Source: Phaeosaccion multiseriatum (Eukaryota > Protista > Ochrophyta, other classes). Taken from it: a stretch of DNA of 64,000 nt. Both the position numbers and the translations under genes were made by a program. This document shows, in pieces, positions 10,768-62,775 of this stretch. Under the pieces are notes generated by a model. That model was not told the origin of the DNA. It saw only the letters and a program-made list of their open reading frames with translations, and did no database searches. The first letter of the stretch is position 1; every line of letters starts with the position of its first letter. The DNA lies in assembly GCA_965112735.1 (NCBI GenBank), contig OZ218960.1, positions 2,914,001-2,978,000 on the forward strand. The letters are read 5' to 3'.

Positions 10768-13494
10768 ATGCTTGGCTTCGTTGCGCTCGCCGCCGCCGGT
10801 GGGAGTGCTACAAGGGATCAAAGCCCTTCCGCTGCGTTGCTGAGCACCCTACCTCAGCTGAGGCTTAGCTGGTCTGCCACCTCTGTTGGCACAAAAAAGA
10901 GAGGTTGTACACGCCTGCTGGCAGGGAGAGGAGAAAGTGTGGAAAAAGGCGGGGGGGAGACGGTACAGTGGGACTGGGGAGAAGCGGATCTGGGGCGAGG
11001 CGTTTACCAGGGCCGGAGCTACTCCAAGGAAGAAGCCTATGCGCCAATTGCCGTCTCAGGAGAACCCTCGAAGCGACCCTCAGGGGGGCAGGGGGTGATG
11101 GGCAGGAGCAGTGGCGGGGCGAGCGATCGAGGAATGGCCAAGAAGCAGATTGCTCTGGTACGCCGGCTCCAGACGCTGGGTAGAGAGAAGCGATGGAAGG
11201 AGGTGGCGCGCGCCCTGCAGGTTGCCAAGCAGGAGCAGGGTGTTTTGTTCAACGACCGAGTGTATGGTGCGGCCATCCACGCTCTGGGCCAGTGCGAGCG
11301 GTGGAGAGGCGCAGTGGCCTTGCTTGAGGAGATGCAGGAGGATGAGAGCGGCTTGTTAGAGCCAAATGAGATCCACTTTCGCTCCGTCATTGCCACTTGC
11401 GCGAGGCAGGGGCAGCTGGAGACGGCAGAACGTGTGCTGCTGCAAGATATGACGGAGGCCGAGTGCGGGGCTGACTTGGACGCATTCAACGCGCTCTTGC
11501 TCGAGTACGGCCGAGCAGGACGGGTGGGCAAGGTGCTGGCCCTGTTTCAGGCAATGGAGGCTCAGGGCATTGTGCCAGACCCATTCAGCTACAACGCGCT
11601 CATCAGTGCCCACCTAAAGAGCGGGGAGGTGGAGCAGGCGGTTCAAACCCTTCGTGGGATGCGCAAGGGCAGCACCATTAAAACCGTGGGAGTGGAAGTG
11701 ATGCCCACTACCGTCAACTACAACACTGTCATTGCTGGCCTGGGGAGGGCGGGCCTCGCTCGTGATACGCTGGCATTACTGCGTGAAATGCGAGAGATAG
11801 GTCCCCCACCCTCGGACAGGACGTTCTCTGCCGTCGTTACCGCTTGCAGCAAGGCCGGCTTGTGGAGGGAAGGCATCATTGTGCTGAAGGAAATGTCGAG
11901 GAAGGTGAAGGAGGGAGGCAGCGAGGGGGCTATCCAGAGAGGCAGCGAGACAAGCAGTAGTAGTGGGGGGATGAGCTGTGCGGTGTACTCCGTACTGATG
12001 ACCGCGTGTATCAAGGCGGGGCAGCACTCCGCGGCGGTCGAAGTGTTTGACGCGATGCACAAGAGGGACGGTGTACAGCCCGATGCCCAGGCCTACGGCA
12101 CACTCCTCACCGCCCATGGACAGCTGGGTGAGTATGCGCATGCGAGCACGAGGCTCGGTGAGATGCGCTCGGCAGGTATTACGCCCAATCTCGTGGTGCA
12201 TAACAGCCTTGTCTTTGCGCTGCGCAACGCCGGGCACTTGGAAAAGGCAGTGGATGCGCTGGCGGAAATGGCAGTGGACGACCTCGCCCCTGACGCTCTC
12301 ATGTGCAGCAACTTGGTGGCGGCGTGTGGCAAGGCAGGCAAGCTCAAACTCGCGCTGCGAGTGCTTGAGGTGATGAAGCAGAGCACCCAGCAGAGCACCC
12401 AGCAGAGCACCCAGCAGAACGGATCGAGCCCGAGCACCCCGCCTGGCCGGGTAATTTACAATGCGCTGATTGCAGCTTGCGGAGTCGCAAAGGACTGCGA
12501 CAAGGCCTTTGAGCTCTATGCCGAGATGCGCGCGAGTGGCGTGGAGGCAGACATCGTCACGTTCAACTCACTCATCACGGCCTGTGGCAAGGCCGGCCAG
12601 CCCGACAAGGCCGCTGCGGTGCTGGAGGACATGGTCCAGAGTGGAGGTGCCGTACTGCCCGAGGCCATCACGTACAATGCCCTCATGAGAGCCTACGCAC
12701 TCGCGGGGCAGTGCGACGCGGCCTTTCGTGTCTTTGATGAGATGCAGGCGGTGGGGGGCCTCAAACCGGACTTTTACAGCTTTGACGCGCTCATCACGGC
12801 GTGTACAGTAGCGGAGGACCACGCACGCGCACTTGACACGCTTGTCGTCATGACCTCTACATACGGCCTCTGCCCCAACATTATCATCCTGAACAAGCTT
12901 GTGAAGGCGAGCGCCTCGAGAGGAGAACACCACATTGCCCTCGCCCTGCTCAAGGAGATGCGAGCGGCGACTTGGGGTGTGCATCCCGACTTCACCACGT
13001 ACCAGACACTGTTGGACGCCCTCTTCCTCTCGGCGTCGGGGGGGGACAGGGTGGGTTGCACGGAGTTGTGTGACGAGGTGTATGCCCAGGCATTGGCAGA
13101 GGGGGCGGTTTCACACTGGGCCGAGGAGAAGGAGAAGAAGAGCAGTGCTGCTGCTGCTGCTGTATCACCAACTGGTGGAGGTGGGGGTGGTGGTACGGCA
13201 GTTTCAACGGAGGGCGGGACGGTTTCCGAGTCGAGGAGCAGGAGTAGGACGACGACGAGGAGGACGAAAAGGAGGAGGGTGGACTTGCGCGGCTGGTCCC
13301 ACTCGATGAGTCGTGCAGCCCTTCGCCATGTGGTCTTTACGGAGCAGGTCCGAGGGGAGGTGGAGGTGGAGGCGGGCAAGGGAGGAGGGGTGCTTCATGG
13401 ACTGGTCATGACCTTTCTCAGCCACGATCTCGGGCTGTCGGCCACGGTGGAGGCAGGCTCAAGGGGCGTGATTGTGTTCCAGGTGGATGATTGA
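10768..13494 (+). CDS. Pentatricopeptide-repeat protein with C-terminal SMR-like domain, intronless
   Basis: Roughly 15+ 35-aa PPR motifs (e.g. PDPFSYNALISAHLKSGEVEQAVQTL, DIVTFNSLITACGKAGQPDKAAAVL). C-terminal VDLRGWSHSMSRAALR..VEAGKG..LVMTFL is SMR-like. Start could be 10633 or 10768. Confidence 0.88.
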   Translation: MLGFVALAAAGGSATRDQSPSAALLSTLPQLRLSWSATSVGTKKRGCTRLLAGRGESVEKGGGETVQWDWGEADLGRGVYQGRSYSKEEAYAPIAVSGEPSKRPSGGQGVMGRSSGGASDRGMAKKQIALVRRLQTLGREKRWKEVARALQVAKQEQGVLFNDRVYGAAIHALGQCERWRGAVALLEEMQEDESGLLEPNEIHFRSVIATCARQGQLETAERVLLQDMTEAECGADLDAFNALLLEYGRAGRVGKVLALFQAMEAQGIVPDPFSYNALISAHLKSGEVEQAVQTLRGMRKGSTIKTVGVEVMPTTVNYNTVIAGLGRAGLARDTLALLREMREIGPPPSDRTFSAVVTACSKAGLWREGIIVLKEMSRKVKEGGSEGAIQRGSETSSSSGGMSCAVYSVLMTACIKAGQHSAAVEVFDAMHKRDGVQPDAQAYGTLLTAHGQLGEYAHASTRLGEMRSAGITPNLVVHNSLVFALRNAGHLEKAVDALAEMAVDDLAPDALMCSNLVAACGKAGKLKLALRVLEVMKQSTQQSTQQSTQQNGSSPSTPPGRVIYNALIAACGVAKDCDKAFELYAEMRASGVEADIVTFNSLITACGKAGQPDKAAAVLEDMVQSGGAVLPEAITYNALMRAYALAGQCDAAFRVFDEMQAVGGLKPDFYSFDALITACTVAEDHARALDTLVVMTSTYGLCPNIIILNKLVKASASRGEHHIALALLKEMRAATWGVHPDFTTYQTLLDALFLSASGGDRVGCTELCDEVYAQALAEGAVSHWAEEKEKKSSAAAAAVSPTGGGGGGGTAVSTEGGTVSESRSRSRTTTRRTKRRRVDLRGWSHSMSRAALRHVVFTEQVRGEVEVEAGKGGGVLHGLVMTFLSHDLGLSATVEAGSRGVIVFQVDD

Positions 13495-13654: not shown

Positions 13655-16311
13655 ATGGGGAGTAGCGAGCAAGAGAGGAACGAGGCCTTGGAGGCGCGTG
13701 GTGAGTAGCCTATATGGAGGGCTTGGTCAGACAGAAAAGGTCCAGGCCTCGCTCTTTATTCCCTACGCAATTCAGCGTGTCTTCTCTCGGACCTGATAAT
13801 ACCGCGGCACCAGCTCTCCTGAGGTCCGCTCGCTGCTGTACGCCTCACTACTCTTCACCCCTGCTACCCCCCTCTGCCCCGGGACTCACTCCTCTGCTCC
13901 TGGTCTTCTCTTCACTCTCTCCCTTCCATTCTTTGCATTATTTTTTCACTCAAAAAAAAAAAAGTCAAGGAGCTGGCCGACAAGTACGGCATCCGAGTGG
14001 AGGACATACCTCCGGCTCTGCACCAGGCCATCTTTGGCGACTTCACCACGAATGAGGTAGGCCTGTCAATTGCGCTTCAAGTGGAGGGGCACTTCTTCTC
14101 CCCCACTCGCTCGGAACACTACTACTAGTTAGTCTCAAAGACTTCCCTCCTCCTTCCACTTGTTCGCTCCGATGACGTCGTCGCGTGGCTGGGGCGATGC
14201 CCTGTGCGTACGACCTGTGTGGCTGGATCGACCCCTCGGGCTGACACTGGTGGTCGACAGCTCAAGAAGCCAAAGCAGGGAGTGCGGAAGGTGCGCAAGG
14301 GGACAGAGAGGGGAGCGTGTTGCTTGCTTTAGCTGAGGGAAGGCCTTGGCTACTCGTCCTCCCTGTGTGGCCGTCGGCAGCAATCGTACTGTTACAGGGA
14401 AGGGGGCAGCCTCGCTTGGCTCTTCTCAGCAAACATACTTCTTTGTCGTTCCCACCGGGCCGCCCTCCACCGCCCTCCCCCCTTCCCTTCGCCCCCCCCA
14501 AACCTTCCTGCGGTGAACTAACCGCCTGACTGCAGATCGTGGCAGCTGTGAAACGCTTCAAGGAGAAGGTCCAACCCGTGCTCTACGTCCCCGCGCCACC
14601 GTCTTCCGCTGCTGCGGCATCATCAGCACCCTCCTCCTCCTCCTCCTGGTCTGCCTCAGCCGCCTCTGCCTCCTCACCTGGCGGCCAACAAGATGGAGCA
14701 GCAGCAGGAGTGTCCGCGTCCGCTCCCCCCCCTCGCCTCGAGGAGCATGTGCAACAGTTGGTGGTCCAACCCGGAGGAGGAGTGGGCCCCTCTAACTCTG
14801 TGAGTACGATCACCGCCACCGCAGAGCCGTCGGAGGACGGGCAGGGGCAACAGCAAAAGGCACAGCAGGACACTCAGGAGGGAGGCGAGGAGGAGGAGCA
14901 CCCCAGCAAGAAGTCCAAGACGCCACCGCCCCCTCAAGACCCTCAGGCTGTGGAGCCCTTCTCCTTCTTGCCTGCCTTTCTCTCCGAGGTTCGAGCCGTT
15001 GGACCTTTGCTCGGGGACGATGCTCAAGGTCACGGCCGTGGTCAGAGCCGGCTTATGCAGCAGCTCTTTCACTACTTCACCAGCGAAGCGGAGGAGCTAC
15101 GAGCCTGGCACGAGCGGCAACAGCAGAGGCGGCTCAGACAAGAAGGAGAAGCAGCGAACTCCACCCCCGCTGCCGCTGCGGACGATGAAGATGACGAGGG
15201 CAGCAAGAAGCAACCGCCCTTGCCTCCCTCCCGCCGCTCTGTGGCCTCCTTTCTGCGCCTCCTTCAGCTGCAGAAGGAAGTTCTGTCGAAAGGTGTGTGT
15301 GAAACAAGCTCTGTCTAATTTGTATGTGCGTTTGTGTATGTGTGTGGACGTGTGCATTTGCGTGTGTGGACGTGTGGACGTCGTGGCCGTGCCCGGCGGG
15401 GGAGGCCTTTCTATTCTGTCTCTTACCTGTCGCAAAGCCGCCCACCCCTCTCCCTCTCTTCCTCGAGGCCTCTTGGCAGGAGTGGCAAGCAAGCGTGCTC
15501 CTTGCGTTACCTTCCGATCAACCAATTGCTGATCGTAGCTACCCACTGCCCCACTGCCCCACTACTCCACTACTCCACTGCTCCACTTGGCCAATTCACC
15601 ACTGCCCCACCCCCGCGCCTGTCGCCTCTGCCTCTGCTGAACAGAGTGGATCTGTGTGGCGATTCTGGAGAACCTCTCGGATCCCAGGAGCGCAACGGAA
15701 GGGCTGGTGAGTGAGAGAGAACAGCAGAGAAAGGGAGAGAGAGAGAGAGAGCCAAGGAGAGAAAGAGAGAGAGAGAGAGAGCCAAGGAGAGAGAGAGAGA
15801 GAGAAGCAAACGCCATAAGCTCAAGCTACTCACAATCGGTCGTTTGGGAGTTTTTTGGGGGGGGGGGGCGGCAGCAGGGAGTCGGCGACAAGTCACAGGA
15901 GAGCAAGAGTTACAGTTACAGCAAGAGGTACAGCTACAGCAAGAGTTACAGTTACAGCAAGAGTTACAGTTACAGCAAGTTACAGTTACAGCAAGAGTTA
16001 CAGGCTCGAGGCCTGTGGCAGCGAGCGCTTTACCCAACTCGCTCTCGTGTTGACGTGTTGGTACTACTCTAGTTCAGTGCCTTAATGAATCTCTGTCTTG
16101 CCCCTTTGGCTGCTGGTGCCTCTCTCAGGTTCAGCTCCGCAAGGGAGCGAAGCTGCAAGAAGAGATCAAAGCCAACCACCGGAAGGTGAGCAAGACAACT
16201 CGTGAGACGACAGCGCCTCGCTCCTCCTTGTGGTGGGCTCGCATACACTGCCTGCGCCTGTTTGCTCTTCGTTCCTCGCTCACTGGCGCCCGTTACTTGT
16301 GTATGTGTGTG

Positions 16312-19296: not shown

Positions 19297-20404
19297 GAGG
19301 AGGAGGAGGAGGAGGAGGAAGCGGAAGAGGGAGAAAGGAGAGGAGGCGAAGGAGTATCCCTTCGTCCCCTGTCGGTCGCGGCAAAAACATCGAACGAGGC
19401 TAGCCGGCCTTCGTACTCCGACACCATCCTCATCTTGATTAGGACCACGGAAGCGAGGAAGTCCATGTTTGGAAACTCCCTGAAAGACGGGAACTCATCC
19501 AAGATGTCCTCCAGCATACTCGGGGCGGAGTCTCCAGCTGGGTAGAGCCAATCACCGTCCTGCCCAAGCCGAGCCGACCAGGCCAGAGCACAACAGAGTA
19601 GAGCAGAGCAGTTGGTGCTACAGAGCCGTGCCGAGGGGTAACAGATTCGTGAGACGCAGACACACACACACACGCAGCGGTAGCCAAGAGCAGTGCCAGG
19701 AGAGCCAGAGCAGCCAGAGAAGTTGGTGATACAGAGCCGCCAGCTGCCTACGGCGGCGAGAGCAGCAAGCATGCGCACACAGCCAGACGTGCAGGGGGCT
19801 GCGAACAAAGCCTCAAGATTGAGCACCCAGACTCGGCACCCTCCCCCTTCCCTTTGTGGCGCTCGCAAGTTGCCGCCGGGTGTGTGTGGGAATGCCTAGC
19901 AAGTCAATCAAAGTGGGCACCCACCCCCCGCCACACCCCCAAGTACATGCACATACGCATGCATACATACATACATACATACATATACATACATACACAC
20001 ACATACATACACACATACATACATTCATACATACATACATACATACATACATACATACATACATACATACATACATACATACATACATACATACATACAA
20101 AGATACACACATCTATCTATCTATTTATGCATACATACCTGCGTACCGTCCGGCCACTCCTCGTTGACGATGTCGAGGTTGATGTGATGAAGCCACCACT
20201 TGATGAAAGAGTAGCAGTCCTGGTCTCTGTTCATGTACAGCAAAACTGAGGAGGGGAGGAGAGGGGAAGGGCCGGCATGAGTTCGCGCACGAGCCATGAG
20301 TGAGAAGGCGAATACCATCAGAGATATACAACAGAGTGAGGACAGCTCCTCCCTCCCTCCCTCCCTCCCTCCCTCCCTCCCTTCCTTCCTTCCTTCCTTC
20401 CCCT

Positions 20405-21441: not shown

Positions 21442-22501
21442 TCACATGAGTGCGCATCCTGTCGCGGAATCCCTCTCCTGCATCATGGCCTCGATGTCCC
21501 CTTGGCTGAAGCTCCTTGGATGCACATCCTCTAGGTTGGGCAGCCCCCTGAAGGCAGCAGGAGCAAGGAGGAGCAGTAGAAGCAGCCGCAGGAGGCGAAG
21601 GAGCAGCAGCAACAAGACCAGGGGGAGCAGCAGCAGCGGCAGCGGTAGCAGGAGGAGCGGCAGGAGAAGGTCAAGGATCAGCAGGAACAGCAGCAGCAGC
21701 AGCAGATCTTTCCTCGAACTACAACAACAACCGAAGGCTAGGCACCACATGTCTATATCGTACCTGCGGCTGTAGAAGAGAATGTAGGCCGACGATGTGA
21801 GCATCTCCTCGTCCTTCAGCGGCGTCACCTGAGCAGTTGGTGATACAGGACAAACCAGCGATGTGAAAAATGCAAGCGAGGGGGAGGGTTGGGTGTGAGG
21901 GGCCGCATCAAAAGGGCGGTAGACGCCTTGTCATTGCATGATTGACTAGTGCATACAGTGCCTACCTCCGAGTCGTTACAGTAGTGCCACTTTCCCGTCT
22001 CTTGTGACTTGATACTGGCCACGTAATGCCCCGCACTCAACGCCCCCAAGTGATGCACCACCGCGTACAAATCGTAGAGCTGCGACTCTGCTGTATCACC
22101 AACTTGTGCTGCTGCTGCTGCTGCTGCTACAGTTTCACCACCTGCTGGTGCAGTATCAACACCTGCTACTGTTGCTGCTGACTCCTCTCCACCCCCGCTT
22201 GCCTCCTCCTGCTGCTGCTGCTGCTGCCTCCCGATCGCGGCCGCCGCTCCTGTATTCCCACCTGCTGCTGCTGGTGCTGCTACTACTGCTGCTCCCGCGT
22301 CGTGGCCACTCCCTCTCTCACTCTCGCAGATCTCCTCCTGGCTTGGTTGTTCAAGTGGTGACACACCGCCGGCTGGCGACTGCTCCACACTGCCCTCCTC
22401 ATGTGCCGCCCCTGCTCCTCTCTCATCCTGCCCCGCAGCTGACCTCACACCCCCCCCTCCAGTTCCTCCTCCTCCTGCTCCTTCTCCTCCTCCTGCTCCT
22501 T

Positions 22502-22542
<41 letters not shown>

Positions 22543-23294
22543 CCTCCTCCTCCTCCTCCTCCTCCTCCTCCTCCTCCTCCTCCTGCTCCTCCTCCTCCTC
22601 CTCCTCCTCCTCCTCCTCCTCCTCCTCCTCCTCCTCCTCTTCCTCCTCCTGTGGAGCTTTGTTGCCCGACCACGTATGGCGAGAGGTCGAGGCCCTTGAT
22701 AGGGAAATTCACAACGTTTCTGAGCTTCCTCCTCGAGTACTGCGTGTACTGGAAGCGCTTGAGGTGGATCACAAGGATGGGAGGGAGGCGCCAAACTCGC
22801 AGTTTCAGCTTGGCTGAGCGGAGTTCCTTACACTTGGAGCAGTAGCCCTACGAGCAAGGGGGGGGGGGGGGATGGCAGTGGAAGGGGGAGGCGAGGGGAG
22901 AGGAGGTACCAAGAGTGAGTGGGAAACGCATGTGTAGGCACAGAGCGAGAGTGACGTACGGTACGGCCTACAGCTGTGCCTGAGAATGCCCTCCCCTCTC
23001 CTCTCCTACCCGTACGCCATGTGTATACCCTCTCCTCTCCTGCCCATATGCCTGTGTATGCCCTCTACTCTCCTGTCTGCGTACGTACACCCTCTCCTCT
23101 CCTGCCCATATGCCTGCCTATCTGTCTCTATCCAGCCACTCACCTCATTGATGGCCTCCTCTGCCGTGAAAGTGTCTAGGCACTTGTGCAGGTTGAGGGG
23201 GCGATTCTCCCTCTCCAGGCACTCCCCCAGAGAGGGGTCCAGCACACACGACAGGGCTTCTGCCGTATCGTACTTCTCCTAAGAGAGGGAGAGA

Positions 23295-23328: not shown

Positions 23329-26300
23329 CACACAGAGAGAGAAAGAGAAAGAGAAGAGAGAAGAGAGACACAGCGTGAAAGAAAGAGAAACAGAGGAAGA
23401 GAAGGAGAGAGAGTGTGTGTCGCCAGAGCACAGCCCAGCATACCACAGCAGGGTCAGGGTCAGGGTCAGGGTCAGGGTCAGGGTCTAGGTCAGGCTCAGG
23501 GTCAAAGGCAGGGTCAGGGTCAGGGTCAGGTTCAGAGACAGGGTCACAGGGTCCGGCTCACTCTGGTCAGGATAAGTCAGACAAGGCATGGTCAGCGTCT
23601 GTCTGGTCAGGCTCTGGTCGGGTGGATGAAGAAAGAATGGCAGTCTAAGCCTCCCCCCCCCAAAAAACCAACCTTCATGACGGTCAGATGCCAGTCCACG
23701 GCCAATGTGTCCCCATCCCTGATGTCCGCCACCTCCTCCTCCGAGTCCGCCACGAGACAGCCCACACAGCCACTCAGCCAGTGGCAGCGACTGCACGCCG
23801 TTCCGCTGCTGTTGACCCTCCGTAGACGGAAACCCCACACCGGCACCGGCCCTGCAAACAGATCCTCTGATGTGAGGCGCGTTTGGGTAGCAGCGGCCTT
23901 CTTCTTCCCCTTCGCTGTGTCCTTCATCTTCCCCGTTCCCCCTCCCCCTCCTCCCCCTCCTCCTCCTCCTCCCCCTCCTCCTCCTCTTCTTGCTGCGGCT
24001 GCGGCTGCTGCTGCTGTAGCTGCCTCTTGCTCGTGTTCCGCCCCCGCCAAGGCCGCTCGGAAACCTTCCTGATAGGCTTGATCCGCCGCCTCCACCACCT
24101 CGTCCACCCCTGGGGCATCCTTCACAAAGCGCCGCAGACGGGCGTACAGCATCTGATACAGAGCCCGGCCGCTGAGGGGAGGGGTGTGGGTGCGTGCGCT
24201 GCTGGCCACACACACAAGCGGAGTGCCGAAGACCTAATGGGGTGGAGGGACACATAAACACACACACACGCGCACACACACATACACAACACACACACAC
24301 ACACACGTGCGTTATGATCGGTGGTACACTGCGCCCCGTACGCTTGCGAGCTGAAACTGGAAACTGAAAGAGAGCCCCACACCCACGCACCTGCACTGTG
24401 TAGGGATTGACAAGAAACCTCTCCCCCCTGGCCAGGCAGCGGTGCAGCACTGCGAATAGAGGAGGGCGGGGCCCCACCTTCACCCGGGGAGGAGGAGGCG
24501 TGGCAGGAGGTGGCAGTGGATGGGGAGGAGAAGGTGGAGGGGGAGGAGGCTCGCTGGAAGGCACGGAAGCGCCACCACTTAAGGGAGCAGCGACAGCAGA
24601 TGGCACACCAGAGGCAGCATCGTCGCAAGGAACAGGAGACACCCCGTCTACCCCGTTCACTCCCCCCACCTCCCCCTCCTCCCCGTCCTCCTCCTGCTCC
24701 TCCTGCCCCTCCTCCTCCTCCTCGTCCGGCAGCCTTCTCTCCAGCTCGAAGATATGCAGCACTTCATTCTCTCTCACAGAGGAGAGCTTGCGCTCCGGTG
24801 AAATGGTCGAAAACACCTTATGCAGCACCACATCCACCACCACCAAGTCCTGAGCTGCCATCCCGGGGCTCAAGTAGCATCGCCGAATGCGCTCAGAACG
24901 TGCACGTGCAGACTCGACCTCCTCGTCCTCGTCCTCCCCGGTCAGAGAGGAGGAAGAGGATACGGAGGAGGAAGAGGAGGAGGAGCAGCTGCGGAGAGAT
25001 GAAACCGACGAGACGGAGAGGGAGCGGCGCGGGTGGACAGCACCAGTCGTGCCAGCGGCATTGGCCTGTGCATCGCTCTCCATCACGCCGCTGTTATCTT
25101 CATCCCCCCCTCCGCCACTCCCCTTCCCGTCTCTCCCTCTTTCTCTTCCTCCGCGTCCTTCCTCTCCACATTGCCCGTCTGGTGCGCCCTCCTCCTCCTC
25201 CTGCTCCGCCACCGCCTCGTCCACACATGGACACTCTTCCTCCCCATGTGGAGTCTCCTCCTTCTCGTCCTCCTCTTCCTCCTCGTCCTCCCCCTCTGCT
25301 CCCCTCCTCCCAGTGGTTAGCAGCTCAATCAAGGCCGTGAGCACATGTCTGACGCTGCCCGTCTTGTCTACCCGAAGACCGCATTTAATCGGGCATTTGG
25401 CCCCATCCAAGGGCACGAATAGGACGTGTACAGAGCGGGCCGAGTCCTCGGGGAGCGGCAGCTGGGGTATTATGGGCATTGGGGGTATTATGGGGATGGA
25501 GGATGGGTATGGACCGCCGAGGATAGAGGAGGAGTATGGGTGCACGAGTACAAGGGGTGGGCACGGAGACGCAATGGGACGAGTGAAGGGAGGGAGGGAA
25601 GGGGGTCGATCAGCGATGGTGTGGCCACTCAGAGAGAGAGAGGGAGAGGAGAGAGAGAGAAAGAGAGAGGAGGGAGGGGGGGGGGTGCACACGCACACAC
25701 ACACATGCACACACGCACACAGACACACGCCCACACACACAAACACACGCAAACGCATGCACGCACACGCGCACGCACACACACGCACACACACGCGCAC
25801 GCACACACACGCACACACACGCAACATGGCCCGACACCAAGTACCTGGAGGAAGGTGAAGGGCTCGAAGCGGGCGGACTCGTAGCCGCACTCTCCACAAG
25901 TCAGTAGAGACTTGAACTGACCGGCGAAGAGCGCCGTCTTAAGAGAGAGGATAGTTGGTGATACAAAGGGGAGAATAAAGTATCAGCCTGCATGCTTGTC
26001 TCTGTCTCCCTCTCAGTCAGTCAGTCAGTCAGTCAGTCACTCAACCACTCACACACTCACCATGATCGAAAAGTCTCTCTTGAGGTGGTTTCTCCACCAG
26101 ATGTCCGCCAGCAAGCTGTCATTGCGGCCGTCACTGCAGCAGAGCAGAGCACATTCACATCAAAGCAAGCAGCAGAGCATTCACATCAAAGCAAGCAGCA
26201 GCAGCAGCAGAAGCAGCAGCAGAGCATTCACATCAAAGCAAGCAGCAGCAGCAGCAGGAGCAGCAGCAGCAGCAGCCAATGAGGGGTGAGTAAGACAGAC

Positions 26301-27555
26301 CGGGCAGACTAGAGAAACCCCTCTCCTAAACCCCATCACTGGGGAACCCCTCTCCTATACCCATCACGTCTCCCTTCCATCTCGGAACTCTACGTCCCTC
26401 CTTCGATTCCACCGACATTCGATATCGACATTGACATTGATATCGATATCCATCTGCATTGATTGGTACTGGATAGGGCATAATAACCGGAACTGAAACT
26501 AGAACTGCAACCGACCTGTCTGGCTGCTCGATGTAGGGCTTCACGGCCACGCGGTTCAGATCCTCGTTGAGACCGTTTAGCAGGAAGGCAAGCAGCTCCT
26601 AGAGAGTCAGTAAGGCAGTGAAGGGGCAGTAAGTCAGCGAGGGGGCAGTATGCCAGTGAAGTCAGCAGCCCCTCTGCAGCAGTCAATACGCACTCGCGGA
26701 GAGGTTGGCCTCCCTCCACTGACTGACTGACTGACTGACTGGCTGACTGACTGACTGACTGGCTGACTGACTGACTGACTACTGACTGACTGACTTACTG
26801 ACCTGTGCGTCGTGCTGATCGTGCCCTGCGAAGACTTCGTTGAACTTGGCGATGGCGTTCTTGAAGCTCTTGGGGGTCACACACGTCCTATTTGTGTGGA
26901 TGGATGAATACCAATTAATGGAGAGGGGGTGGATGAATACCCATAGTTGAAGGGGGAATGGATGGCCATGGGGGTAACGGTTGTGTTGTTGTTACAATAC
27001 AAGTGGTAACGGTTACAGAACAAGTAGTGACGTATCCTACTCCTCCTCTCCTCCACTTGTTCCTTCTTGTGTCTTACGTACTGCCTACGCACTGCCTGCC
27101 CACTGCGTTCCCACTTACTTGTCCGCCGTCCACAGCTCCTGTACCAGTTGGTGATACACCTGCGCAAGCTTCCCCTGCAGGCCCAGCTTGTTCTCCACGT
27201 TGATATCGCCGAGGAAGGCGCCTGAGGTGAAGTACTCCGTGAGAAGGGGCGTGTGACTCAGGCACTGGAGGGGGGGGGGAGGGGACGGGAGAGGGGGAGG
27301 GAGAGGGGGAGGGGGGGTAAGTCCGCTGCCTAGTGATCGTGTCTCGCGACACAGAAACACACTAAAGCGACACGCACACGCACACGCACGCACACGCACG
27401 CACACACATGCACACACGAACACACACGCGCACACACGCATCTGCATGCCTACTACGGACCTGAATGGAGGCGTTCAAGTAGCAACTGTTGCCCAAATTG
27501 TTGAGCCCCACCAAGCCGTTTCCGAGCTTCTGCTGCTGGATCACCAACTGCTGCC

Positions 27556-27587: not shown

Positions 27588-30500
27588 ACCACTGACTGCC
27601 TCTGCTGCCCTGGCTGCCCTGCCAGCCCCTGCTGCCGCTGCTGTATGGCCAACTGCTGCTGATGCCGAGCCTCCTCCTCCTCCTTCTCCTCCTTCGCCGC
27701 CTGCAAGTCCGACTGCAGCTGCGACCTCGGCCATGAGCCATCTGTGAGTGCGATCTCCAACAACAGCAGCTGCCCGTCGTGCAACCCTGCCTCCTCAAGA
27801 GTCTGCCCATCCAACGCCAGCACAGACTGAGCACCAAGTTCCTCCTCTGGAGGGTTGCGGTTGGCGTAGTTCCACAGATGGCAGCGATCGGGCTCCACAT
27901 TGAGCATGGAGCACAAGTGGTGTAGGAGGGCCTCCACAGTCGCCACTCGAGAGAACAAGACCTCCTTGTGGGTCGGGTTGGGTCTCCCCTCGTGGTTGCA
28001 GGTGCATATCTTGAAGGCATACGGGTACAGCTCCAACTCTAGCACCCCTCCTTTGCCCACAATAACACTACGGGGGATGGGCGGCCCCCCTCCGTACCAA
28101 GCCTGCAGAGCGGCCCAAACCCGAGGGGGCAGTACCTCGTAGTGCATGCCGGGGGAGAGTCCGTCAAGTAACTGCCCGCTCCCCGTCTTGCGCATGAGCG
28201 GCCAGTTGGAGATTTGCCCCGGTTGCTGTATCACCACCTGCTTTACTTGATGGTTTCCCGCCACCCCTGACGACGGCCCCCTCCTTGATGCATGCAATGC
28301 TTCCTCTGCTGTACCACCAGCTGCTGCTGCTGCTACTACTGCCGCCGCCCCTCCCGCCCCACCTCCTCCTCCCCTCCTGCCGGTGTTGATGTGCGAGGAG
28401 GAGACGGAGGAGGAGGAGGAGGAGGAGGAGGAGGAGGAGGAGGCGGCAGCAGCGCTCTCGTGGGGGAAGTGCGAGTACCGACACCAAGCCGCCCACCAGG
28501 AAGACTCCACTAGGTACCATTTGGTGCCTTCCGCGCCGTACTTGCACCTCCGGGACGGGGGATGCATGAGCCTGTGGCGCCGCTCAATCTCCACCACCAC
28601 ATTCCTCTCCTGGATTGGCAGCGCTGGCTGAATGCCCAGCTCGGCAGCGCAGAGGAAGAGTAAGTCATAAAGCAGTTGGGAACGCCCCGAGTGGGCCGCA
28701 GTCCACGCCATGAAGCCGGCGAGGCTCACGCACTTGGTGCTATGCACGCTCACACTACTAGCGCCGCCATCTGTGCGCCTTCCGCTGCCGCTGCTTGTGC
28801 TGCTGCGGCTGCTGTTGCGGCTGCTGTTGCTGCTGCCACTCGCTCCCCGGTGATGATGCCCACTCCCACCCCCAATGCTGAAGCTCCTCTTCTTTCTCAT
28901 GCCCCCACCACTGCTCCTCCCCGTCCTGTCATCCCCCCCCCCCCTGGCTTGGCCGTCCTTTTGGAGCAGACCCTCCTCCTCTTGCCCTTGCCTTCGTTGC
29001 CTGTCCTCCAACCCATTCGCTGCTGTATCCCCAACTGCTGCCGTATCACCAACCGCTACCCCTGCTGCCGGTGCCTGCCCGACGGACGCCGCCCGCAGCC
29101 TCTGTCTCGCCCCTGCTCCAGCTCCAGCGTTCTCCTCTCGCGGTACGTCTCCTCCCCCCTCTAAGTGTCGTTTCGGCTGCATCAAAAGTGCCCCCTCTGT
29201 TGCGCCGTACGCTGCTGCTGCCCCTCCTCTTGTCCTTCCAGCTGTCCCTCCTGTTGTCCCTCCTGCTGCCCCTTCTGCTGCCTCACGCTCATCGGACGGA
29301 GGCGGAGTGGGAGTGGGCGTGGGCGTGGGCGCGGGCGGAGATGGGGCAGCAGGTCGTCGCTCTACCACGTACTTGTCCGACAGAGCCGCCAGCTCGTCAA
29401 ACAAGGCGTCCATGATGGCTCTCATACCCACTGTAGGGTCGTAGCCCAAAAGTTTCAGCCCATACGCCACAGGCTCATCTACGTGCCGTCGGTGGTTGTG
29501 TGAGTGGTGGTGGTGGTGGTGGTGGTGACGATGATGCTGGTGGTGGAGGTGGCGGTAATAGTACAGCCGATGACGCTCGCCGCTCGTGGGACCTCCTCCT
29601 CCCCCATCTCCTCCTCCTCCTCCTCCTCCTCCTCCTCCTCCTCCTCCTCCTCCTCCTCCTCCCTCCGCTTCTCCATCTCCTCCTCCCTCCCCTCCTCCTC
29701 CCCCTGAAGAAGAAGCAGATCCCCCCTTGCGTTGCTGTTGCAGCGCCTGAGGCTTCATAGCCTGAGGCTTCATAGCCTGAGGCCGGCTGTTGCTGACCCC
29801 AGGTACCTGGTCCCTGAGGAAGTGGTGCAGGGAGAGAGAGAGGAGCGCGTCCTCCACCTCGTCGTATCCAAGCACGCTGGTGTCAGGATGGAGCGTCAGG
29901 CCAGAGGGGGGAGTTTGAGTTTGAGTTCAGTAGGGGGACCTTCCCCTTTCCCATGTACCGAATACGATACCAAACACAAGAGATCGCTATTGAATGGGAC
30001 AGGGAGAAGAAGTTAAAGATAGGTAGGTAGGTAGGTAGGTAGGTAGGTAGGTAGGTAGGTAGGTAGGTAGGTAGGTAGACAGGAAGGTAGGTAGGTGGGT
30101 GGGTAGGTAGGTGGGTGGGTAGGTAGGTAGGTACGTAGGTAAGTAGGTAGGGAGGAAGGAAGGAGGTAGGTAGGTAGGTAGGTAGGCAGGTAGATAGGTA
30201 GGTAGGTACGTGGGTAGGTCGGTCAAGGTAGGTAGGTAGGTAGGCCGGTAGATAGGCCGGTAAATAGGTAGGTAGGTAGGAAGTAATCAGTGCAGCGATT
30301 GCCGCCTTGTGTCGGCAGGCCCCATCGGTCAGTGGGGAGTCAGTGGGGAGGAGGAGGAGGAGGAGGAGGAGGAGGAGGAGGAGGAGGAGGAGGAGGAGGA
30401 GGAGGAGAATGGCAGTGGGTGCATGCCGACCATAACAACCACCGCCTCTGTTCCCAACTGCCACAGCAAGTGAACTTGCACACTTACCCATCCTCGTCCT

Positions 30501-33704: not shown

Positions 33705-36700
33705 AGCATGAGAAGCATACAGGTGCACTTACACTTGCACGCACGCCCCCCCCCCTCCCTGTTCTCGGTCCTTCCCCCCCCTTTCATACATACACACACT
33801 CTCTCTCTGCTACCCCCCTCGCTCTCCCGAACTTTGCCCGCTCTTTCTTTTCGGCCGCGGGGGTGTGGGTCTCCAGGTCGACATGAGCTTGTGGAAGCAC
33901 TGCTTCAAGCGCATCTCCCTCCACGGCTTGGCGGAGGCGTCATCCCTAGACGACACCCCACCCCAAGGGCCAGAAGGAAGGGGGCAGGAGAAGAACAAGG
34001 CACAGGCTCAAAGTCACGAGAGAGTGCGACGCTCCGAGGCCCTGCGCCACTTGTCGGCAGCGGACAGAGCCGCTCTTCTCTTGTACGGGCTGTTCCCCAC
34101 GGTGGAGCGGCAGCACTGGGGAGGAGAGGAGGGGGGGAAGAAGGACTCAGAGCTGGTGCGACATACTCAGACTGGAGACAGAAGAAGCAGCATGAGCACC
34201 AGTAGTAGTTTCAGTAATGGCATGTATCGGGCTGTGTTTGCCTCGGAGTACAGCACTCGGCCCTCGAAGGACTTGTGGCTTGGCGCCATCGTGGAGGTGA
34301 GTGCCGAGTGGGAATGGAGGGACGGAGGGGAGGATGTACGTAGGAGTGGCGGCAAAAGAAACGGCTCCCCGACGAGAGAGACACGACTCTTTCTCTCTCT
34401 CTCTCTTTTGGCACGCTCCTCTTTGCTTGTCTTGCTTGTGCAGTCGGACCCCTCATCGCAAAGAGCCAAAATTGCCCCCCCCCCCCCCCGCCCCTTCCTC
34501 TCTGTCCTCCTCCCCTCACGCAGGCGGCCGAGGGGCTGGGCTGCCAGGCAGAAGGCAGCCTATGGCAGCTGAGCAGCCCTGCCACCTGCCACCCTCCACC
34601 CCCCCCCGTCCCTCCTTCTTCTCCTCCTCCTCCTACGCCCGCTGCGCTGCACCGAAACGGCCTCTATGTGGTGGGGTGTCCGGCGTTTCGCGACTTTGTG
34701 CGTGAGGCGAGGGTACGGGCCAGTGAAGCTCTGGACGAGGGTCGAAAGGAGGGTGGGTGCGAGGTGGCCGGTGAGTAAGCAGTTGTGTGTACGATATAAA
34801 GAGATTGGGAACGACTGTTTTGATGGATTTTGGAGAACGTGGATTGGGCAAGCGAGGAATGGGAGGGTAATTGACCCCTCCCTCTCCCTCTCCCTCTCCC
34901 TCTCCCTCTACTTGTCTCTCCTCTCACTTGTTCATCCATCTCTCTTTCACGTACATGCATTTCCTTCCACCTCTTTCGTGGGCAACACACAGGCTGTGGG
35001 GTCTGTGGAAAAGAGGGGGAAGGCGCAGGCGGAGGGGTGGGGGGGGTGCTTTGGCAGCACCGCATGGCGTTACAGAACGGCACGCGCGCACAGGCGGAGT
35101 CCGTGAGGGGGCGCTTCGCATACACAAGCCTGCTTGCTGCGAGCTCCTGTGGCGGGGACTACAACTCTGTCGATGGGCCAGGGGGTGGCGTATCACCAAC
35201 TGTTGTGCTGGTGCTGGACGACGACTGGGCGCTGCTTTCAGATACGGAGAGGACGCTCCGGCGAGCGGTGAGGGGTGCCTTGGGCAGAGGACCGAGCAGG
35301 GCGGAGCGGTGCAGGCATTATGCTCGCCTCAGGAGCGGCGAGATGACGCGAGAGAATGTGGTGGAAGAGGTGTGTGTGCACCACCAGCAGCAGCAGCAGA
35401 AGGGCGAGGGGGAAGAGACGTTGTCAGAGACGTGCCAATCGGCGCTGCAAGTGAACGATAGCGGAGGAACGCAGCAGCAACAGCAGTTGGTGGTACAGCC
35501 GCAGCCGTGGGTAAAGCGCTTTCCGGGGCAGGTGTACTTGTGGACGGTGGACTTCCACGCCGGCCCAATCGCGTGCAATATGCCCCTCCTGCGCGAGGCC
35601 GGGGTGGTGGTGCACGCAGAGGTTGACTTTTCGAACTGCGTGTACACGGGTGGTGTGTGTAGGGACAGGCTCAAGGTGCTCCGCCTCGACAAGTGGCGAG
35701 GGGTGTCGCTTGACTCTCCCTCCGGTGGGGATTCTCCCGGTGGGGACTCCTCCTTCCCGGGGAGCGGCAGTGGCAGAGTCGCACGCGACTTTCGGGCGGC
35801 GTATGTGAAGGATGAGGAGATGCGGGATAGGGTGGATGTGGTAATCTGCTCGCACCCAGCCGCCAACTGTGAACTCTTCCTCGAACTGCCATCCCATAGG
35901 GGGAAAGGGAAGGAGAAAGGGGATGAGAAAGCAGCAGGGGGGAGGGCGGTGGAGGAGGCGGTCATCGGAAAGGAGACGAGCGAGGAAGGTGAAACGCCTC
36001 TGTTGGCGCTGGTCGTATACGCCACCACGAGGCTGGAGTTTGGAAGGGACGATGCCGGGGTGCGATGGAGACTGCCCTTCTACGATGAGCGCACGGCTCC
36101 CAAGCGATGGGAGGGGTGGGTACGAAGCGTTATTGCGATTCATCGGCGGGCGAATGGGGTGGTCCTCGCCAACAATCGTTACGACGCCATGTATATAACA
36201 TATCACACAGGGGTGGAGGTGCAAGTTGTGCCGTCTTGGTGCGGTGATAACGACTCCAGCTATGGCTCCGAGTCGGCGTGCGGCGGGTTGCCTGTGGAGG
36301 GCAGTCGAGGGGCGGCGTGGAGCAAGACGACAAAGGGGAAGAGCGGGGGCGGGGAGGACAGGAGGTGGTGGTGGTGGTGGTGGCGGCGGCGGGGAAGGGA
36401 CGGTGGAGGTGGTGGGGTAGGGGGCTCCCCTCCTCTCCATGATGATGCTGACGCCTCGTCTAAGGAGTCCAAATCGGAGGATTGGTATGGGCACAGGGAG
36501 CCCCTCTCTTACCTCCCTGTGAGGAACTCGCTTGTGATTGGGCCATACCGCACAAACCTCGACCGCACTCGGATGGACAATCTCAACGCACCCCCCCGGG
36601 ACCACCCTATAATGAAGGGGCTGTTCGAGGCCTATAGAGGTCAGGAAGGACTTTTATTTTCCTTGGCTTGCTTTGCTGGATGCCCCACCCCCCGCCTGTT

Positions 36701-40350: not shown

Positions 40351-42001
40351 CAGCAAGAGATTGCAGCAGCGGAGGCCAGAGCAGAAGCGAACGCAGAGGC
40401 CCGCATACACATTGTGGAGAGAGACCTTCGTGCCGCTCAGCTCAGTGAGGTGGCGAGGGCAGAGACTGAGGCCCGGGCGGCGATGGCTCTGCAGAGGAGG
40501 CGAAGTCAGGAGCTGCAGGCGGAGGCAGTGAGGCAGGCCCTGAGGGAGAGGGATGTGGCGGGGGAGGAGCTCATATCCTCGCTGAGGTGCGTTGCGGTGG
40601 ATTGCATTGGATTGTTAAAGGATGGAGGGAGAGACGAGGAATGGGGACTGGGGAGCGAGGAATGATGCGGAAGGAGAGAGGAGGAATGAATGAATGAATG
40701 GGGAAGGGGGGGGGGGTTATATCTTCTTTCAGGTGCGGCGCCCTCGTAGCAATGAATTAGAGAACGGAGGGAGGGAGGAGCGAGCAAGTGTGCGTGTACG
40801 CTTGTGAGGCTTGCTTGCGGTGTCTGTATGGGTACTTACTCCCTCCCTCCCTCCCTCCAAACCGAACACAGGAGCGACGAGGCGGAGCAGCAGGGGCAGT
40901 TGGTGATACAGCATGGGGTGGGGGAGATGAAAGATGCCATGCTGCTGAGTCTCAAGAAGGGGCTCGTACGCACTAGGCAGGCAGGGGCACTCAAGACTCT
41001 GAGCAGGGCGTGGACGACTCACAGAAGGCGGCATGTGGAACAGGCCTGGCGACGCTGGTTGGTGTACAACTCGTCGAGCTACGCCAACGTCATCACAGAG
41101 GTTTCTGTGTCGCAGAATCGCAAGACCGCGGCTGCGTGCCGCATTTTGGTGAGGGGGGGGGGGGTATGGGGGGTAGGAGGGAATATCATACATGCTGTCA
41201 ATGTTTGCTTGCTTCGTATAGTTGTCAGTGATGTCTCTCTCTCCCTCTCCTTCATACTCTCTGCCTCTCTCCTTGTGTGTGTGTGTGTCTGTTTGTGTTC
41301 GCGTGATGTCCTCTCCCTCCCCCCTCCTCTTCAGTCATCTCTACAAAGCACGCACCTGCGGGCCTTACAGCAGCAGCAGGCCTTCTCCCGCTGGAGGTGG
41401 GGCACCATTGCTTGTGACGAGGGCAGCGCCGCATATGGAGTGCGCAGAGCGGCTCGCCATTACGACAGACTGCTTGCTGCGGAGAGGCTACAGCGTCTGT
41501 CTCTTCGTAAGCGGGTGCGTGCGTGTACGTGCGTGTGCGTGCGTGCGCGCGTGTGTGTGTCTGCGTTTGTCTTTGCTTGTGTGGGTATGAGGTGTGTAGG
41601 TATGATATCGTGGTGTTCCACTTTCGGGTGGAGGCAATTTTTTTCAAAGGAGGGATGGCAGTCAAAGGCATCGTTTTCCTCCGATCTGTATACACCAGAC
41701 GCATACCTGCACACGGACGCCTGGAAACCTGAGACTGGGACTCTAAGACTGAGACACTCAAAAACTCAAACTGAACTAACTGAAACCCTCCCTCCGTCCG
41801 TCTCTCCCTCCTTCTCTCCAGAGCGACTCGATGCTGCGATGTCTTCTCCGATGGCGGGCGGGGGCGGAGGGGTGGACAGAGCGTGCCCGGTTGTTCGCAC
41901 AAGTGGGTCTCCTGCACGAACAGCTCAGCGTCGCCAAGAGCGAGGCCTGGAGCTTCAAGAGGAAGGTGCTGAGGGAGGTGGTGGAGCGGAGCATGGCCTG
42001 A
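38924..42001 (+). CDS. Coiled-coil protein with W-rich Sfi1-like motifs, about 7 exons
   Basis: In-phase exons 38924-39359, 39477-39697, 39813-40064, 40354-40586, 40872-41148, 41335-41514, 41822-42001. E/Q/R/A heptad-rich, with motifs LSRAWTTH, EQAWRRW, AFSRWRW, CLLRWR. 5' end uncertain. Confidence 0.6.
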
Positions 42002-45876: not shown

Positions 45877-52343
<6,467 letters not shown>

Positions 52344-59437: not shown

Positions 59438-59472
<35 letters not shown>

Positions 59473-61966
59473 GAGTGTCTCCCACCACGGTGCGGCTCCC
59501 GACAAAGTCGACACAGTGAGGGGCACCACCCGCGTCCACCTCTCGAATAACACTTAGGGGAGAGAGGGGGGGGGAGGGGGAGGGGGAGAGCAAAGGGGGA
59601 GAGCAAAGGGGGGTAATGGAGAGGGGCGGAGGGTGGAGTCGTGGTGTGGAGTGGGTAAGGGCTCCAGGGCGACTTGGCTCGAGTGTGTGTGATCCTCCTT
59701 TACTAACTCCGACCCTTCCCCTGTGCGCCTAACATCTTCTTGCCCCTCCTCCTGCCCCCCCAAGAGGCAGCCCCTCCGTGAGTGACAGGGCAAGCTATCG
59801 GGCTACTCCTTACGCTAGAACAGTCAAAGCAACTTCCCCTTCCCCTTCACCTCTCCTTTCCCCTCCTCCTCCGGCTCCCCCTCCCCCTCCTCAGCCTCAG
59901 CCTCCCCCCTCCCTCCCTCCCCCCCTCCTCCTCCTCCTCCTCCTCCTCCCCCTCCCCTCCCCCTCCTCTCTCCCTCCTCCTCCTGCTCCTCCTCCTCCTC
60001 CTCCTCCTCCTCCCCTCCCCCCTCCCTCTCTCACCCTCCTCCTCCTCCTCCTCCTCCTCCTCCTCCTCCTCCCCCTCCCCTCCCTCCTCTCTCTCTCCTC
60101 CTCCTTCACCCTCACCCTCACCTGGAGGACAGACAGGCCGAAGAGACGCGTATCGAGTACAGTACCACCGAGCTCAGGGGCACACTGTCCCCCCGTCCAC
60201 TGCCATCCCGCCCCCCGCCCCTCTTCGGCAGATACGTTTCGAAGGTTGCTGCCAGCACGTCACTGCGCGTGTCCCACACCAAGTCTCGCACACGGACGGC
60301 GCCCCTGGGAGGGGAGGAAAGCAGGAGGCATATGGGAGGAGCATAGGCAAAGCAGAGGCAGTGGGCAGGGGCGCAAGGGTAGAGCAGGACAGAGAAAGAA
60401 AGGCGAATCAATCATCAATAAGAAGGCACTGGAGCCTTCCATCAAGCTCACGACCCTCACCCTTCATTCTCCCGCCCACGCCCCCCTCTTGTCCTTCTTA
60501 CCTCGGTGTCTTCTGCCGCCTCCCGTCGCTGTCCCCGGCCTCCTCCTCCGCTTCCCCCTCCTCCTCCTCCTCTTCGTCCTCCTCACCCTCCCCGCCTCTA
60601 TTTAAATCGGCGGCTATCCTCGGTAACTGCAGCTGTAAGCGATGTTGCAACATCTCTACAGGCACCCCTCCTCGCCCTCCTCCTCCCCATCCACTACCAT
60701 CTCGCCCCACACTCTCAAATGGCGCCCCCACGTGAAGCACCACCGCGCTACGCAGGTGCGAGAAGACCACGAGGAAGCGCGAGGAAGGGTCCCAGACCGC
60801 TCCTCGGCAGGGGCAATCTGTCCAGCTCTCGGCGGCCCATGCCCGCGTCTCAAAGAGCATTACCCCTTTGGATCTGCGGCCCAGAGGAGGGTGGGGGGTG
60901 GGTGTACGAGTGGGTGGGTGTACGAGTGAGTGAGTGAGTGAGTGGGTGGGCGAGTGGGTGAGTGAGTGAGAGAGCGAGTGAGTGGGTGGGTGAGTGGGTG
61001 GGCGAGTGGGTGGGCGAGTGAGTGGGTGAGTGAGTGAGAGAGTGAGTGAGTGGGTGGGGGTGGGAGGGCGGGTGGACGGGATGAGTGCTAACATGCTGTT
61101 CCACTCACTTCACTGGCATGCCCTACATACGACAGCACTCACTTGCTCGAGGCGGCGAAGAGGAATGCCCCGCTGGGGGACCACCTTAGCAGATCCACTG
61201 GCCCGTGCTGGCCCCCCGGGGTGCGCACGGCCGTACTGGCTGTATCACCAACTGCTGTGCTGCAGGCCGGCGCTACGTCCCACAGACGCAAGCAGGACTC
61301 TGAGGGGGAGCAGGAGGCCAGCAAGCGGCCCTGTCGTAGGCAATCGGCAAGTATTGGGTCATTCTCCGCCAGTCAGTCAGTGAGTCAGTACTCCAATACT
61401 TGGTGTCAGTCAGTCAGTCAGTCAGTCAGTCAGTCAGTCAGTCAGTACTTGGTGTCAGTCAGTACTTGGTGTCAGTCAGTCAGTACTCCAATACTTGGTG
61501 TCAGTCAGTCAGTCACTGCCCACCTGGGGACTCCATGCCAGCTCGTGGCAGGGCAGCCTGAGGGGATGCTGCAGGAAGCGCATCCAGCAGTGCGGCGAGA
61601 AGGAGCCTGACGAGTCTACTATGCCCTCCGCTCCGAAGCGCCACAGGCAGATTCCGTGTCTGCAGGAAGCAGTAGAGGCAGAGAGAGGACGGGCGCGTGG
61701 ACACGGAGAGAGAGAGGGCGAGAGGGAGAGGGAGGGATGGGAGAGGGAGAGGGGAGGGGGTGGGAGGGAGTGGGAGAGAGATAAGAGAATCATCAGAGAG
61801 CCAAAACGGAAGGAGAGAGATAGAGCACACATACGCACACACACGCTACTGCTGCTCACCTGCAACCCACGGCGAGGAGGGCGGGAGAGGCGATGGGTCC
61901 CCAGCGTAGGCACGATATGTCGCGCTGAAAGTCGTGCGACAAGGGGGAGAAGCCTTTCAGGCTGTG

Positions 61967-61997
<31 letters not shown>

Positions 61998-62775
61998 TCT
62001 AGCACATAGCTGTCGTCGCTGCAGGCGTATGGGCAGACGGGTAGGAGGTTGAGAGGCAGGACGGACGGACGGACGGACGGAGGGAGGAAGATAAGAGGCA
62101 TGTTGGTGCGCAGGTAGGCAGGGAAGGATGAGGATGGGACGGGAGGGTGTGTGAATGTGTGTACTTGTGCTCCCCCGCCCCCTTCCTTCCTTCCCTCCCC
62201 CACAGTAGATCGAAGGCCCTATATGGCACTCACGTGCTGCCACTGCCCCTGGTCCGAGCCAGGTGCTGCACGTCGAGGAGAGCGACGGTGCAGCTGTCGT
62301 TGGGCCGCGCCCCTGCCAGCACCACCGCCAGCACCCGCTGGGCTGGGTGCCACGACATCAGGGCGGAGGAGGAGCCAGTTGCAGCAGGGGTGGGAGAAGG
62401 GTTCGGGGGTGGCCTGGGGGGAGAGGGGGGGTGTGGGTGGGGGGAGGGAGGGGAAGAGAAGGGGGGTGAGAGGCAAGCTTGCGCTGGGGAAAGGCGACTT
62501 GTCTGTTCGCCCCCTTTTGTTGTTGCATACCCTCCGCTTAGAAGACTCCAGCCCTTGCGAAGGGCGGTGGACACCCAACCCCCTCCACCTCCTCGTCCAG
62601 GGCCCTCCTCAGGGAGATTCTCCAGCTCCTCGTCCTCCTGCTGCAGCGAGAGGTCGCCTCCATCGTCCTCCTCGCAGACCTGCGCCAAGATCTGGCGCCA
62701 AGGGATGGCAAAACTTGTCAACACTTGGCCTCGCCCGCTCCCCTCGCTACGCGTTCGGTTGCCGTACGGAGCCAT
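59300..62775 (-). CDS. AAAS: Aladin (AAAS) WD40 nucleoporin, multi-exon
   Basis: MSWHPAQRVLAV..LSHDFQRDISCLRWGP..LAVGC..GICLWRF..LAWSPQG..LASCSPSESCLRLWDVA..LLRWSPSGAFLFAAS..LFETRAW..AVWDPSSRFL..LVWDTRSDVLAATF follows the aladin motif order. Start uncertain. Confidence 0.82.

Follow-up and report, generated by a model that had tools for sequence, protein, structure and literature searches.

The window analysed here comprises 64,000 nt of the genome of Phaeosaccion multiseriatum (contig OZ218960.1), and the subject of the analysis is a 12-base word, GTATCACCAACT (reverse complement AGTTGGTGATAC), that is dispersed through the window. Pfam matches and homologue alignments identified a PPR gene, a USP32-like gene (USP) with EF-hand, DUSP, UBL and UCH domains, and an AFG2-like AAA ATPase; positions 35049–37804 hold a further gene, which is conserved but uncharacterised. 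The USP gene was closest to that of Phaeothamnion confervicola, with 72–82% identity in the conserved exons, and the AAA ATPase to those of brown algae and Chrysoparadoxa, with 57–65% identity over the domain. The PPR open frame had no close relatives in the protein database, the collections of which do not include this genome's own proteins. A few percent of the sequence words sampled from the region were found in marine metatranscriptomes.

Altogether 12 exact and 6 one-mismatch copies of the word were present in the window, and the analysis of the word rests on these 18 copies. All of them lay at the coordinates and on the strands listed in an earlier, model-made reading of the letters alone (the original prediction). 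The strong, frame- and strand-independent over-representation that it had claimed was borne out: 12 copies stand against 0.002–0.13 expected from shuffles and Markov models, and the word occurs in 5 of the 6 possible reading frames and on both strands. Markov models of orders 2–5, with the actual copies kept in the training data, predicted 0.002–0.045 exact copies, and dinucleotide shuffles predicted 0.13 copies with at most one mismatch. When up to three mismatches were allowed, 60 matches were found and 33 were expected, the excess being made up of approximately 12 exact, 6 one-mismatch and about 9 two-mismatch copies.

A census of k-mers of 11–16 bases showed that the word is the only dispersed, non-simple sequence in excess in the window. 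A second dispersed word was not found there, the candidates being local tandem arrays. The invariant unit is exactly 12 bases, and no truncated copies occur in the window. Since half-words and sub-words of 6–8 bases showed no separate excess beyond the full copies in the window, the word behaves as a whole unit.

The uncharacterised gene holds the word three times. Two of these copies, 35190 (GVSPTV) and 35485 (QLVVQ), share an exon and differ in frame and strand, and the third, 36914, is probably in the following intron, in a third frame. The probability of the codons used, given the peptide, is approximately 5e-4 for VSPT and 2e-3 for VGDT, so that the word cannot be accounted for by a null model that preserves peptides or codons. 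The low exact-copy expectation and the rare codons together indicate that the copies at 27146 and 35190 are due neither to chance nor to peptide convergence. The proposal that the word originates at the level of the DNA and thereby introduces short peptides into proteins that are not related was upheld by these improbable codons and by the occurrence of VSPT and QLVVQ in one exon with a third frame in the next intron. Of the peptide readings of the copies, VYHQL at 27146, VSPT at 13162 and 35190, VGDT at 22093 and QLVIQ at 50993 were confirmed as exonic, whereas LYHQL at 21835 (intronic) and 36914 (probably intronic) are open-frame artefacts.

The claim that some copies are intronic held for 21835 and 25953, which were placed in USP introns, and probably holds for 36914. 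The copy at 21835–21846 (minus strand) is in a short intron and ends 6 bases before the exon (CTCAG/GTGACG). The copy at 25953–25964 (minus strand) is in the pyrimidine tract of an intron of approximately 120 bases, 15 bases from the exon, and has no CAG context. At 36914–36925 (plus strand) an exact copy with a GGGGC extension is at what is probably an intron end, 15 bases before the candidate 3' splice site GCTCAG/AAAGTC. The intronic copies are thus all in the sense orientation, 6, 15 and 15 bases upstream of 3' splice sites (n = 3, with the site at 36914 being a candidate). We attribute this position to the target context, since pyrimidine tracts complement purine-rich repeats. The orientation of the word relative to transcription was 6 versus 8, that is, without bias, which argues against a role of the word at the RNA level. 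The long open frame never coincides with the stop-containing frame of the word (SW*), and open frames of 2.0–3.3 kb run uninterrupted across copies.

Two exact copies occupy conserved coding sequence without changing its length. The copy at 27146–27157 (minus strand) lies in the USP exon 27267–27121, which ends with a canonical GTAAGT donor, and encodes VYHQL in a length-conserved helix of the catalytic domain. The LA–LW spacing of this helix was identical in 25 homologues; Phaeothamnion has LAHVYAHLVHELW, with VYAHL in place of the VYHQL of the window. At the DNA level, GTG TAT CAC CAA CTG GTA of the window corresponds to GTG TAC GCG CAC CTG GTG of Phaeothamnion; TGTA and CTG are common to both at the edges, and the orthologous Phaeothamnion codons differ from the word. 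The word thus takes the place of resident codons: the conserved Y and L are kept, no residues are added, and the copy is a replacement and not an insertion. The same Cys-box exon of Phaeothamnion contains an intron of approximately 170 bases (8012–8182 of its sequence) after ...NKLGLQ, which is absent from the window exon.

The second such copy, at 35190–35201 (plus strand), lies in a conserved exon of the uncharacterised eukaryotic protein. It reads VSPT, with all four codons ending in A or T, in the same columns where 11 homologues have AVSP, AASP or QSP, and there is no four-residue insertion. The copy is followed by GTG CTG GTG CTG, which resembles a CTG repeat. Chance alone would give no more than about 0.05 exact 12-mers per window, and the codons are rare at both sites; the copies at 27146 and 35190 are true members of the family, and they are replacements and not insertions. 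The copy at 50993–51004 (plus strand), which encodes QQLVIQQQ in the N-terminal linker of the AFG2-like ATPase, aligns without a gap to brown-algal AELSIS, and PLA is conserved three codons further on; there are gaps nearby and the region aligns weakly, so that a third case of replacement is suggested by this alignment. A product of a biased conversion process had been one of the candidates offered by the original prediction, and the two exact copies that replace conserved coding sequence at unchanged length provide direct support for it. Self-comparison revealed no empty site within the window.

The surroundings of the copies were then compared. The unit is written AGTTGGTGATAC on the purine-rich strand; C precedes it in 9 of 12 exact copies, A follows it in 10 and a further G in 8. 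Many copies have the form CAG-TTGGTGATA-CAG, although the core is better conserved than the triplets on either side, which are incomplete in a third of the copies. Conservation around the word faded gradually into the flanks (exact copies, n = 12), and comparison of 250-base flanks among copies revealed nothing in common beyond simple repeats, in agreement with the earlier statement that flanks are not shared. There was no target-site duplication, as the left and right flanks differ in 4–5 of the 12 exact copies (e.g., TTT-word-ATC and GGC-word-GTT). Terminal inverted repeats were likewise lacking, and the 12-mer with its flanks is not self-complementary.

Six of the 18 copies abut, or sit at most 6 bases from, a perfect (CAG)3+ tract of the same strand type, and none abuts a tract of the opposite type. 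The remaining copies are in AG-rich or pyrimidine-tract contexts, where the word is again always on the purine-rich strand. The word never departs from the phase of the CAG or purine-rich strand and has a single orientation relative to it. CAG-type tracts were found upstream of it as often as downstream, and a tail-like (AGC)n of 1–5 units follows it in about half of the copies. The CAG tracts of the window are 9–35 bases long, and the predicted hairpin stability at equal tract length is approximately 1.7–1.9 kcal/mol lower with the word.

Nine-base interruptions with (CAG)2 on both sides were nearly all decayed forms of the word: TTGGGGATA, CTGGTGGTA, TTGGCCATA and TTGGTGATC. Copies of different ages occur within single tracts, as at 22093/22132/22153, 27538/27586/27643 and 29025/29043. 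The possibility that these are repeat interruptions created by point mutation was ruled out, since TTGGTGATA agrees with CAGCAGCAG in only 2 positions out of 9 and unrelated loci contain the identical word.

In 4–5 copies a GGG marker is present 1–4 bases upstream of the word. It has the form CAGGGGC-AGTTGG at 36914 and 40898, and one extra triplet intervenes at 27538 and 29043; the GGGGC extension occurs on one side of the word only. As GGG interruptions are otherwise rare in the window, their association with these copies looks like co-conversion. The copies at 36914 and 40898 have 29 bases in common at 97% identity.

The word appears to be specific to this lineage. No copy with at most one mismatch was found in 16.6 kb of Phaeothamnion, 22 kb of Chrysoparadoxa and 27 kb of Scytosiphon (orthologous or neighbouring DNA, approximately 66 kb), where approximately 19 would be expected at the density of the window, and the same DNA contained no analogous dispersed word. 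Since the copies decay, individual sites are not maintained. The idea that each site is kept as a binding site, in the manner of the DNA uptake sequence (DUS), Chi or the highly iterated palindrome HIP1, found no support: copies decay, are absent at orthologous loci of the three relatives, and favour neither promoters nor one strand of transcription.

When viral and metagenome contigs were scanned, only single chance matches in AT-rich phage or bacterial coding DNA (VGDT or LLYHQL codons) came up, and nothing related to the algal phenomenon. An unrelated marine metagenome contig has, at positions 770–850, a tandem 12-base array, GTRTCACCAGYW, in which the exact word appears two times; the array resembles a tetrapeptide repeat in coding sequence and not the algal case. 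In the searchable literature the 12-mer occurred only in unrelated primers, the 15-mers did not occur at all, and nothing was found on a repeat of a comparable kind. A tRNA scan of the window and an Rfam scan (1–27390 and 27450 onward) gave no match and no abundant RNA as a source of the word, and no parent element or RNA carrying it was found within the window. Resemblances of the word to the tRNA D-arm, U4 and U6 were dropped as 7–8-base coincidences.

Most of the copies lie within lineage-specific low-complexity inserts. In the PPR protein, the exact copy at 13162–13173 (plus strand) adjoins (GCT)5 and encodes AVSPT in the low-complexity C-terminal tail. Two minus-strand copies are in DNA that looks non-coding: the exact copy at 19721–19732 is on the purine-rich strand of an AG/CT-rich stretch without a CAG tract, and the one-mismatch copy GTAGCACCAACT at 19610–19621, in CT/TG-rich DNA, has approximately 35 bases of flank in common with it. 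In the USP gene, the exact copy at 22093–22104 (plus strand) adjoins (GCT)7 and reads QVGDTA; it belongs to an enlarged linker of low complexity, directly ahead of the His-box block, and the decayed copies 22132 and 22153 are close by. The linker of the catalytic domain (22090–22660) comprises approximately 197 residues, including poly-Gly, Gly-Ala, polyglutamine (polyQ) and polyA stretches, compared with approximately 58 in a transcript-derived homologue.

Further plus-strand copies with one mismatch follow in the USP region. The copy at 27538–27549 reads QLVIQQ in a lineage-specific polyQ linker, carries the GGG marker and shares its tract with the decayed copies 27586 and 27643. The copy at 28228–28239, with the reading QVVIQQ, marks the place where a lineage-specific insert of 71 residues meets PGQISNW, a conserved block of the DUSP domain. 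Two copies 18 bases apart at 29025–29054 each read AVGDTA and have different mismatches, and the second has the GGG marker. In the exon of copy 35190, the one-mismatch GGTA variant AGTTGGTGGTAC at 35485–35496 (minus strand) reads QLVVQ in a variable polyQ stretch. Exact copies are further present at 40898–40909 (minus strand), which is GGGGC-extended and lies in an open frame reading QLVIQH, at 48529–48540 (plus strand), where a 741-base minus-strand open frame reads QLVIRQ, and at 61242–61253 (plus strand).

Other repeats were also seen. The window is very rich in tetranucleotide microsatellites, namely (CCCT)n, (CATA)n, (CCTT)n, (ACTG)n and (CCTA)n, each of which runs to tens of units. At 61380–61520 a (CAGT)n repeat is interrupted four times by TACTTGGTGT, which has TTGGTG in common with the word; either a tandem array of local origin or a relative of the word that has adapted to a different repeat could account for this. 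Local tandem arrays are present at 9540–9610, with at least 4 repeats of the 17-base unit GAGGTAGTCCAAGACAG, and at 15900–16000, with 6–18-base units of the CAGTTA / CAGCAAGAGTTA type.

Equal-length writing, in-phase flanks and a carried marker, without ends or duplications, are best described as short-patch templated copying. We therefore favour, with a rough probability of 0.45, the reading that the word spreads by short homology-anchored copy-over from other copies, that is, by ectopic conversion or template switching, and not by insertion. The copying mechanism itself, and the bias that would let the word increase, are what we infer from these observations. A broken or stalled strand in CAG, AG-rich or similar sequence would pair through a few flanking homologous bases with another copy, copy across the word and return in register; this would amount to short-tract gene conversion between ectopic sites or to template switching anchored by microhomology. 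Either DNA or RNA could act as donor of the 12-base patch. Within CAG tracts, four repeat units would give way to the word, so that phase and reading frame would be kept, and in ordinary coding sequence selection would retain only those events whose translation is tolerated.

As for the bias, our guess is that uninterrupted repeats break more often and would become recipients, while interrupted tracts would serve as donors; the lower predicted hairpin stability with the word may lend weak support to such a recipient bias. We would go further only tentatively. It is conceivable, if rather less probable than not, that the word is a self-reinforcing 'conversion parasite', i.e., a sequence without genes, ends or structure that multiplies in a eukaryotic genome through the repair of breaks in purine-rich simple repeats, with the copies already present as templates, and rewrites coding sequence in place.

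Several points weigh against copy-over. Neither a copy-over event, nor an empty allele, nor a donor–recipient pair was observed. Tracts of 9–35 bases are short for classical homologous recombination, and non-repeat intron copies such as 25953 show little flanking homology. GC-biased conversion would oppose the AT-richer word, so that another bias has to be assumed, and the dominance of one word is left without explanation. The firm cases of replacement are only two, the third (AAA ATPase, 50993) being in a gapped region. At 27146, five changes in 7 bases are not unusual for that exon (P = 0.46), and the clustering of substitutions was accordingly dropped as independent proof of a templated event.

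Among the rival explanations, RNA-templated addition by a dedicated reverse transcriptase is unlikely, but less so than the others. Here the extreme 3' end of a retroelement with a (CAG)n tail would be copied at nicks in repeats, or a telomerase-like enzyme with a 12-base template would write the unit. The fixed unit length with sharp edges, the GGGGC extension, which is one-sided as for 5' variable copies, and the frequent (AGC)1–5 after the word would all fit. Graded truncations within the word are however absent, repeat tracts precede the word as often as they follow it, the equal-length copies 27146 and 35190 do not resemble target-primed insertion, and no parent element was seen in the window. 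The same two copies, which add no residues relative to homologues, count against the view that the word is a micro-transposon mobilised in trans, a true 12-base insertion for which some unknown site-specific enzyme would choose C^AG or purine-rich targets. Such an enzyme would account for the 12 bases that persist unchanged outside CAG contexts (25953, 19721, 27146, 35190) and for the location of most copies in lineage-specific inserts. It would have to act without target duplication or termini that a transposase could recognise, and a fixed insert would not be expected to have the GGG marker linked to it; we consider this explanation improbable. We place no more trust in a functional DNA motif that, like DUS, Chi and HIP1, originates where it stands and owes its persistence to selection or motif-directed repair; such a motif could be the site of an abundant factor of Myb-type or GATA-type DNA binding, of replication or of recombination. 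The word contains CAGTTG/CAACTG, a Myb-type core, and equal-length copies in rare codons within conserved coding sequence are what bacterial uptake sequences look like. The copies nevertheless decay like neutral DNA, none is found at orthologous loci or in the approximately 66 kb of the three relatives, the tie to the CAG strand is left unexplained, and point mutation cannot turn (CAG)n into the word. A cis-regulatory site is further contradicted by the lack of promoter preference and by copies in exons and at intron ends.

Excision footprints of a CAG-targeting DNA transposon would be short and fixed in size, and the CAG on both sides of the 9-base core in many copies could be seen in this way. 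The core is however not palindromic, as footprints of inverted-end elements are, the flanking CAGs are incomplete in a third of the copies, neither half-words nor full elements were found in the window, and some copies, e.g., 27146, leave the length unchanged. This makes footprints very improbable. We give the least credence of all to an artefact of assembly, adapters or polishing. Copies with 1–3 mismatches are in phase in the same tracts, the 2.0–3.3-kb open frames stay open across copies and the SW* frame is never the long one. Moreover, five runs of one sample and one run of a second sample hold most sequence words of the region, this being a statement on the words of the region in general.

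If copy-over is the correct reading, repeated DNA can multiply without any element-encoded function, purely by a bias of repair pathways, and can rewrite residues in conserved protein domains genome-wide. The word would then report, in a natural setting, on ectopic short-patch repair in simple repeats, for which the only other objects of study are disease loci and reporter constructs. Copy-over would furthermore be a cause of QLVIQ, VGDT, VSPT and YHQL in unrelated proteins, where homology searches could take these shared peptides for motifs. A 'conversion parasite', if it exists, would represent a class of repeated DNA that is new, and in eukaryotes it would correspond to uptake-sequence drive.

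Among known systems, Neisseria DUS, the Haemophilus uptake signal sequence (USS), cyanobacterial HIP1 and Chi resemble the word in being short, exact and far above expectation, in lying in coding sequence in several frames and on both strands, and in using non-preferred codons at sites of unchanged length; they spread by recombination bias and not by transposition. Unlike them, the word is in a eukaryotic nuclear genome, is tied to one strand of simple repeats and is absent from related algae; it is not palindromic, its copies decay, and it does not imply a system of uptake, RecBCD or methylase type. The interruptions that stabilise trinucleotide repeats, namely CAA/CAT within CAG and AGG within CGG tracts, are likewise in-phase non-repeat units, and the predicted hairpin is weaker with the word. 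Those interruptions are however locally arising point variants of single units, whereas the word is the same 9–12 bases at unrelated loci, is present also outside repeats and cannot be derived from the repeat.

Rickettsia palindromic elements and the mitochondrial GC-cluster/byp elements, which are selfish DNA within coding genes, are, like the word, dispersed DNA of non-coding origin tolerated in frame in unrelated proteins, but they are 30–150 bases long, palindromic and inserted, whereas the word has 12 bases and no fold and at least sometimes replaces. Rice Micron, dipteran mini-me and microsatellite-specific non-long-terminal-repeat elements share with the word the association with one microsatellite type in a fixed orientation; they extend over hundreds of bases and have ends or a coding capacity of their own, and there is no such body around the word. 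Polymerase-theta end joining and microhomology-mediated template switching similarly write short patches from ectopic templates between microhomologies, with or without a change in length. Those events are sporadic and their templates all differ, whereas the word would, in the copy-over reading, represent one template family that is self-reinforcing and genome-wide. What is new here is the exact 12-base unit, its lock to the purine strand but not to the direction of transcription, the linked GGG marker, the position of three intronic copies shortly before 3' splice sites (one of them a candidate site), the equal-length replacement in conserved exons and the absence from approximately 66 kb of relatives.

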